The notes under the pieces were generated by a model that was given only the letters and a program-made list of their open reading frames with translations, did no database searches and was not told the DNA's origin. From Macrostomum hystrix (lineage: Eukaryota > Animalia > Platyhelminthes), in contig CATNEN010000030.1 of assembly GCA_950097015.1 (NCBI GenBank), forward strand, positions 3,100,001 to 3,164,000: a stretch of 64,000 bases of DNA, written 5' to 3'. Positions 40,301-40,886 of this stretch are shown piece after piece. Position 1 is the first letter of the stretch, and each line of letters starts with the position of its first letter. Position numbers and translations under genes: made by a program.

Positions 40301-40558
40301 GCTGCGATTGTAGAAGGCCGTTGATTCGGCGATGAGTTCATCGGTGAGCTTGTTCAGTTTCTCAACCGAGTCCGGGAATGCCAGGAGACAACCAGGCGGC
40401 ATCTTTCGGGCATTGTTGATAGTGGCGGCTGCCGTTGTTGCCATGGCGACGACTGGGAGTAGATTGGTTTTAAATATCGAAGATTGCACGGCGACAATTG
40501 ATTGGCGGCAACAACGGACTGTAGCGCAGAGCACAAGCCTAGTTGGGAGTGTGGCGAG
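37373..40558 (-). CDS. THOP1: M3A metallo-oligopeptidase (thimet oligopeptidase / neurolysin homologue); 680 aa from ATG 40444, plus a 38-codon ATG-less extension from the acceptor at 40558
   Basis: Exons 40558(40444)-39220, 38682-38219 and 37726-37373, GT-AG and in frame. Motifs HFYLDLYPRDGKYGHAACF, ETFFHEFGHAMH (HExxH), [39 protein letters not shown]. THOP1 versus NLN cannot be resolved without a tree. Confidence 0.95.
37800..38062 (+). mobile_element. SINE family 2 in peptidase intron 2
   Basis: Colinear with 47352-47667. Confidence 0.85.
38787..39128. repeat. 20-bp minisatellite (TCAGTCACTCAGTCCCTCTA)n
   Basis: Fills most of peptidase intron 1. Confidence 0.95.
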
Positions 40559-40886
40559 CTGGAAATACAATTTGGGCGGTTGAAATTGAGCTTGCTTTCG
40601 ACTGATGAACACAGATAAATTATCTCTCTGCACGGGAAACCGCAAGGGGTGCCACCTTGATCTATTGTAAATTGTAAATAAAAGTACAACGGCAAATTGT
40701 GCTGAAACCAATCGAATTGTTTTTATAAAAATGCTTGATAGTTATTTTACCACAACCGTTTAATTAGGAAACAAAATAAATGAAAATAAAATTGAAATCA
40801 ATTAAAAAATGCAGCTTGCACACGCATTGCGCAAGTTTCAGTTCAGTATAGAACACAGTGAATAAGCGGCTCCCCTCACAATGTAG

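Follow-up and report, generated by a model that had tools for sequence, protein, structure and literature searches.

A peptidase gene behind an SPRTN-like gene

The window, by which we mean the whole 64,000-nucleotide stretch of the Macrostomum hystrix genome analyzed here, carries on its minus strand a peptidase gene of three exons joined by GT-AG introns. Exon 1 spans positions 39220-40558, with the donor G|GTATGG after 39220, exon 2 spans 38219-38682 and exon 3 spans 37373-37726. The coding sequence runs through 40558-39220, 38682-38219 and 37726-37376, and is followed by the TGA stop codon at 37375-37373. Contigs from two public runs (X1 and X2) map on exon 1. The product is 680 amino acids long when read from the first genomic ATG (40442-40444) and 719 amino acids long when read from the AUG of the spliced leader described below. 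Each exon matched the Peptidase_M3 profile (PF01432), with E values of 2.5e-40, 1.2e-56 and 7.3e-26 for exons 1, 2 and 3, and together the matches cover profile positions 2-456 of 457. The zinc-binding HEXXH motif is intact, being present as HEFGH in the frame of exon 2 (38488-38474). The best database proteins overall are from Macrostomum lignano (78-81% identity, short of 100%, as for a close relative or an old paralogue), and the closest proteins outside Macrostomum are animal thimet oligopeptidases (THOP1) and neurolysins (NLN), at 42-49% identity. Matches in the PDB were to THOP1 (1S4B, E 1.2e-67), neurolysin (2.7e-60) and oligopeptidase A (6e-26). The nearest relatives are THOP1 and NLN, not MIPEP, Dcp or oligopeptidase A. 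Judged from its sequence, the gene encodes an intact M3A oligopeptidase that belongs to the THOP1/NLN type, in agreement with the original prediction of an M3A enzyme at this locus. Intron 1 harbors a tandem array (38790-39125, minus strand) of units of ~20-30 nt, in GAGTGACTGA and TAGAGGGACT variants. The M. lignano gene has an extra intron within the region that corresponds to exon 1 of the window gene.

Directly upstream on the same strand lies an SPRTN-like gene (40887-42113), which encodes a SprT-like domain, an SPRTN zinc-binding domain and a C-terminus with a CAG-repeat/polyQ tract. Its stop codon is at 40889-40887 and an ATTAAA motif is found at 40764-40759. A contig from run X5 spans the 3' end of this gene and stops at 40732, 27 nt beyond the ATTAAA motif, leaving a gap of about 173 nt between the apparent 3' end and the acceptor site of the peptidase gene. 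Operon-type spacing in M. lignano has a mode of about 100 bp, with a threshold of 1 kb (PMC8629364). The 173-nt spacing appears operon-like, and under the criterion published for M. lignano the two genes would be classed as an operon. Both M. lignano loci likewise have an SPRTN-like neighbor upstream, in the same orientation (L001:373-1788 and L003:1-278). In the M. lignano interval between the SprT-like and peptidase genes we observed degenerate TTAGGG-like tandem repeats (L001:2500-2680), with the spacing stretched to about 1.2 kb.

The outron, or intergenic stretch, of the window gene (40561-40731, minus strand) has a G+C content of 37% and lacks ATG codons. It shows no meaningful alignment to M. 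lignano, a forced alignment giving 44% identity. In the mapped runs, positions 40560-40731 are without contig cover, and such a gap in cover proves nothing. Sense-strand ATG codons are absent from the whole of 40826-40445 (382 nt on the minus strand, taking in the upstream 3' UTR end, the outron and the N-terminal extension described below), a situation reached in 0.25% of local shuffles. We set this run aside as evidence, since it is merely the 18th longest on its strand in a repeat-rich window and is not shared by M. lignano.

The spliced-leader junction

The sequence TTGTATTTCCAG (40559-40570, minus strand) closes with an AG at 40560-40559, and the exon begins at 40558 with CTC GCC ACA. The acceptor fits the trans-splice motif [T/C]TNCAG reported for M. 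lignano (PMC8629364). Eight public runs contain parts of the stretch, and contigs from four of them were mapped. Record 3 of run X1 is a contig of 587 nt that maps, with 3 mismatches, to 39997-40559 and then departs from the genome into 24 non-genomic letters. The published M. lignano spliced leader is 35 nt long, has ATG as its last letters and ends in ...TTATTGCATG, as printed in PMC8629364. The 24 extra letters, once reverse-complemented and followed by the shared G at 40559, reproduce exactly the 25 nt at the end of this leader, and the G at 40559 coincides with its final G. In the leader RNA, the terminal ATG is followed by a GT donor. The mRNA thus reads ...UUGCAUG|CUC GCC ACA, which puts the extension and the enzyme in the reading frame set by the leader AUG. 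The leader AUG directly adjoins 40558, and 38 sense codons follow it, uninterrupted by a stop, up to the genomic ATG.

The evidence for the junction is one contig from one run, and the RNA label of X1 is a guess; a leader-exon junction arises solely from processed RNA, so the X1 junction stands for RNA despite that guess. Assembled contigs give no proportions and can miss rare alternative junctions. Within the contigs of the four mapped runs, we saw no leader junction downstream of 40558, an outcome that would have spoken against the original prediction of an acceptor at 40559 with the extension frame directly after it. The sequence of the minus strand and the passage of the X1 contig from 40559 into the leader both agree with that prediction, and the published leader puts its AUG in the predicted frame. 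There is little doubt that the acceptor at 40559 is used in frame. The proposal that the isoforms are "SL-controlled" is borne out in part: the leader is added at this acceptor, but "controlled" goes beyond the evidence. A search of the 64-kb window for a copy of the spliced-leader gene, allowing up to 3 mismatches, found none.

A start codon supplied by the leader has precedent in flatworms. Every flatworm leader ends in AUG (PMC12582326), and the genome paper on M. cliftonense and M. hystrix notes that an ATG start codon is likely to be present at the end of the Macrostomum leader. In schistosomes, 28% of the trans-spliced cDNAs have the leader AUG in frame, and more than 40 need it, according to the accounts in PMC9851317 and PMC3510090.

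The N-terminal extension and its counterpart in M. lignano

Read from the leader AUG, the peptidase acquires an N-terminal extension of 38 codons (40445-40558, minus strand), which lacks stop codons, Asp and Glu and has an ATG in none of the three frames, as originally described for a presequence without its own ATG. It comprises 3 Arg and 1 Lys, and Leu, Val, Ala, Ser and Thr are frequent. In each species the extension has 7 Ser plus Thr and no acidic residue, with a net charge of +4 (window) or +6 (M. lignano). The piece best kept between the two is the motif C-R-x-S-[IV]-x-V-Q. Within it, an R-x-S site, which may be a processing-peptidase site with Arg at -2 or -3, falls at residue 19 in the window and at residue 18 in M. 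lignano; R-x-S as such is short and common. Maximal hydrophobic moments were 0.39-0.54 (window) and 0.46-0.72 (M. lignano), values reached by 15-49% of shuffled sequences, and amphipathicity was dropped as support for a presequence because it does not rise above these controls. An open, acid-free frame with at least 3 basic residues arose in 4.9% of composition-preserving shuffles of the 114 nt that encode the extension in the window, and in 11% of shuffles for M. lignano. At each locus, the requirement that the leader AUG be in frame contributes a further chance factor of 1/3, and the chances of the two species are not fully independent because the loci are homologous. It had also been noted that the frame stays open upstream of the acceptor without an ATG. 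This is true for 61 codons, but it is probably due to chance, as the corresponding stretch in M. lignano is only 12 codons.

In the syntenic M. lignano locus (L001, GCA_002269645.1), the acceptor is the same CAG|CTCGC (L001:2997/2998) and is followed by an ATG-less extension of 32 codons and then ACCATGG. The difference in length to the window extension is 18 nt, distributed over gaps of 6 and 12 nt. At the DNA level, the window and L001 are 59% identical in the extension versus 81% in the coding exon, and at the amino-acid level 50% in the extension versus 81% in the mature part. Low identity in the extension beside high identity in the mature part is the usual picture for targeting peptides. 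In the M. lignano extension, the leader frame alone is open and the other two frames contain stops. An open frame in congeners had been proposed as a check on the extension, with stops or frameshifts in close relatives counting against it; the M. lignano extension contains neither, and its indels are in frame. All seven M. lignano cluster entries begin inside the extension or one codon before it, without a Met, and the four NCBI records among them are filed as "partial". Such Met-less "partial" records are what an annotation pipeline would be expected to produce when the start codon sits in a leader that has been trimmed away. Gene finders that need a genomic ATG would call either the short cytosolic form or a "partial" gene, and would overlook a likely mitochondrial form.

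The conservation of the extension rests on M. lignano as the one independent relative. The second M. lignano locus (L003) was not counted as independent, since it matches L001 at 99% identity, even across the outron. When the first 187 residues were used in a protein word search for further transcript fragments from congeners, none was found at E <= 0.001. In the orthologue of the schistosome Heterobilharzia (L002), an in-frame TGA precedes the ATG by two codons, and the extension is accordingly not seen to be old within flatworms. Orthologues from molluscs and a brachiopod (Haliotis, Argopecten, Babylonia and isoform X1 of Lingula) have genome-encoded, presequence-like basic extensions of 45-75 residues before the conserved start region; the remaining orthologues are short. 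A coding-like pattern of substitutions between the window and M. lignano extensions, with 12, 6 and 21 differences at the three codon positions in a protein-guided alignment, was discarded when a DNA-guided alignment gave 19, 8 and 12 (p = 0.09). We consider it likely that the extension is translated and under selection. That it is specifically a mitochondrial presequence is a weaker proposition, with slightly better than even odds.

Two start codons and the destination of the enzyme

The leader AUG lies in UUGCAUGC, where U at -3 and C at +4 make a weak context by the usual scanning rules. The internal ATG contexts are strong in both species, GCCAUGG in the window and ACCAUGG in M. lignano; the good context ascribed to GCC ATG GCA at 40444 is indeed found there, as GTCGCC ATG G with the ATG at 40444-40442. 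The Met encoded by this codon lines up with the first residue of short thimet oligopeptidases (MATT versus MAPT), making it the candidate start of a cytosolic form. Leaky scanning requires the absence of an AUG between the two starts, and in both the window and M. lignano no ATG in any frame lies between the leader AUG and the genomic ATG. The combination of a weak leader AUG, a strong internal ATG and no ATG between them leads us to prefer leaky scanning. Both leaky scanning and RNA that is not trans-spliced had been put forward as sources of a cytosolic form; the former would fit the start contexts better and the latter appears the weaker option. As a claim of its own, the origin of the two forms by leaky scanning is tentative and falls a little short of an even chance.

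The mechanism that we propose starts from an observed step, the trans-splicing of the three-exon M3A peptidase pre-mRNA at the AG at 40560-40559. As the junction contig and the sequence show together, the leader AUG opens the main frame 39 codons before the first genomic AUG. The 38 added residues, basic and acid-free, would most likely act as a cleavable mitochondrial presequence. Some ribosomes probably pass the weak leader AUG and start at GCCAUGG, giving the 680-amino-acid form without the presequence. One gene would then serve mitochondria and cytosol, as is the case for mammalian neurolysin. We give this full account, with a presequence form from the leader AUG and a leaky-scanned short form supplying both compartments from one gene, an even chance of being correct.

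Two simpler outcomes dispense with one of the forms. Nearly all ribosomes might start at the leader AUG, in which case the enzyme would be essentially mitochondrial and Met39 just an internal residue. The leader AUG is the first, lying about 32 nt from the cap, and it is in frame and open; moreover, a flatworm leader AUG can initiate in vivo, as established in schistosomes by Cheng et al. 2006 (J Biol Chem) according to the descriptions in PMC9851317 and PMC3510090. We nevertheless regard exclusive use of the leader AUG as unlikely, given its weak context, the optimal context of the internal ATG in both species, the alignment of that ATG with the start of short thimet oligopeptidases and the lack of any ATG between the two starts. 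The other outcome is that the extension is effectively a 5' UTR, the leader AUG being mostly bypassed or the extra residues tolerated, and that the enzyme is an ordinary cytosolic thimet oligopeptidase. We hold this to be doubtful, because two species share an open frame with basic and no acidic residues despite only 59% identity, the indels are confined to 6 and 12 nt, and the other two M. lignano frames carry stops. On its side are the amphipathicity, which is not significant, the substitution pattern, which is not robustly coding-like, and the schistosome orthologue without an extension; a leader AUG would also be in frame by chance in about a third of flatworm trans-spliced mRNAs (28% in S. 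mansoni in the accounts cited above).

Two forms could also be produced at the level of RNA, with trans-spliced mRNA giving the long form and un-trans-spliced or alternatively trans-spliced mRNA giving the short form. Transcripts starting within the ATG-free stretch 40826-40445 would meet the ATG at 40444 first, and the Echinococcus TGR variants and the T. brucei IleRS discussed below are precedents. But the ATG-free stretch is unremarkable for its strand, the M. lignano outron contains several ATGs, the spacing behind the SPRTN-like gene is operon-like and the outron is without contig cover. The other acceptors that match the motif, at 40701 and 40518, are both out of frame: at 40701 the leader AUG would open an upstream ORF that ends 18 codons on, before the genomic ATG, and at 40518 it would open an ORF that overlaps the genomic ATG. 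An RNA-level switch, the version for which "SL-controlled" stands, is quite improbable. Least credible of all is that the extension targets the enzyme elsewhere, as an ER signal peptide or as a bipartite intermembrane-space signal that uses the hydrophobic stretch across Met39. This 15-residue stretch (residues 34-48) has a mean Kyte-Doolittle hydropathy of 1.85 in the window, but in M. lignano it is shorter and interrupted by Lys, and the first hydrophobic run of the extension is only 7 residues long and flanked by arginines.

The preferred reading, leader-AUG initiation combined with leaky scanning, shares features with several known systems. As in the schistosome genes that use the leader AUG, an AUG-ending leader joins at an AG acceptor, in frame, as the sole start for residues without a genomic ATG. 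Unlike in those genes, the host is a free-living macrostomorph, the leader-AUG start is predicted from an RNA junction and sequence, and the added residues form a presequence-like extension before a strong internal ATG rather than merely restoring a missing conserved N-terminus. Thioredoxin glutathione reductase (TGR) of Echinococcus granulosus has mitochondrial and cytosolic variants that derive from one gene via trans-splicing, according to Agorio et al. 2003 and PMC2873472. The peptidase resembles it as a flatworm gene with trans-spliced mRNA whose products would differ by a mitochondrial leader at the N-terminus, predicted in our case. TGR, however, has two mRNAs with two transcription starts and two acceptors, whereas for the peptidase one junction was seen and the choice is proposed to be made by the ribosome.

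Mammalian neurolysin (endopeptidase 24.16) occurs in two forms, one long and carrying a cleavable mitochondrial signal, the other short and cytosolic (Kato et al. 1997, as cited in PMC10607720), so that the appeal of the original prediction to this precedent is sound as far as that citation goes. The Macrostomum peptidase is a member of this enzyme family (42-45% identity) and shows the same order of parts: presequence (predicted here), internal Met and enzyme. In contrast, mammals use alternative promoters and a genomic first ATG, and the first AUG of the peptidase comes from outside the gene. In T. brucei, isoleucyl-tRNA synthetase (IleRS) is dually targeted through alternative trans-splicing (PMC3273800). 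There, as would be the case here, the addition of the spliced leader decides whether the presequence is coded, but the T. brucei start codons are genomic, two acceptors are used and the trypanosome leader provides no AUG. The peptidase is a new example of a known mechanism, since each element (the leader AUG as initiator, variants derived by trans-splicing and the two forms of neurolysin) is already known. It brings together leader-AUG initiation in flatworms, the dual targeting from two starts proposed here and the two forms of neurolysin. The idea is directly testable, transgenesis being established in M. lignano.

Beyond this gene, a whole class of nuclear genes in Macrostomum, encoding mitochondrial or dual-targeted proteins, may have lost the genomic start codon of the presequence, a speculation to which we assign a low probability. 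If it holds, part of the mitochondrial proteome would rely on trans-splicing to reach its destination, and either the ratio of trans-spliced to unspliced mRNA or the use of the leader versus the internal AUG could set the balance between mitochondria and cytosol. Should the pattern recur across the mitochondrial genes of the genome, trans-splicing would be part of organelle targeting, beyond mRNA maturation.

Elsewhere in the window, an ORF at 51130-51342 (minus strand) contains in-frame Met codons (...LRMAQS... and ...LAMPLA...) and a poly-Ala run. GC and AT skew are extreme in the segments 26001-28000 and 42001-44000 (GC skew of -0.80 and +0.56, respectively), which suggests long strand-biased simple repeats.
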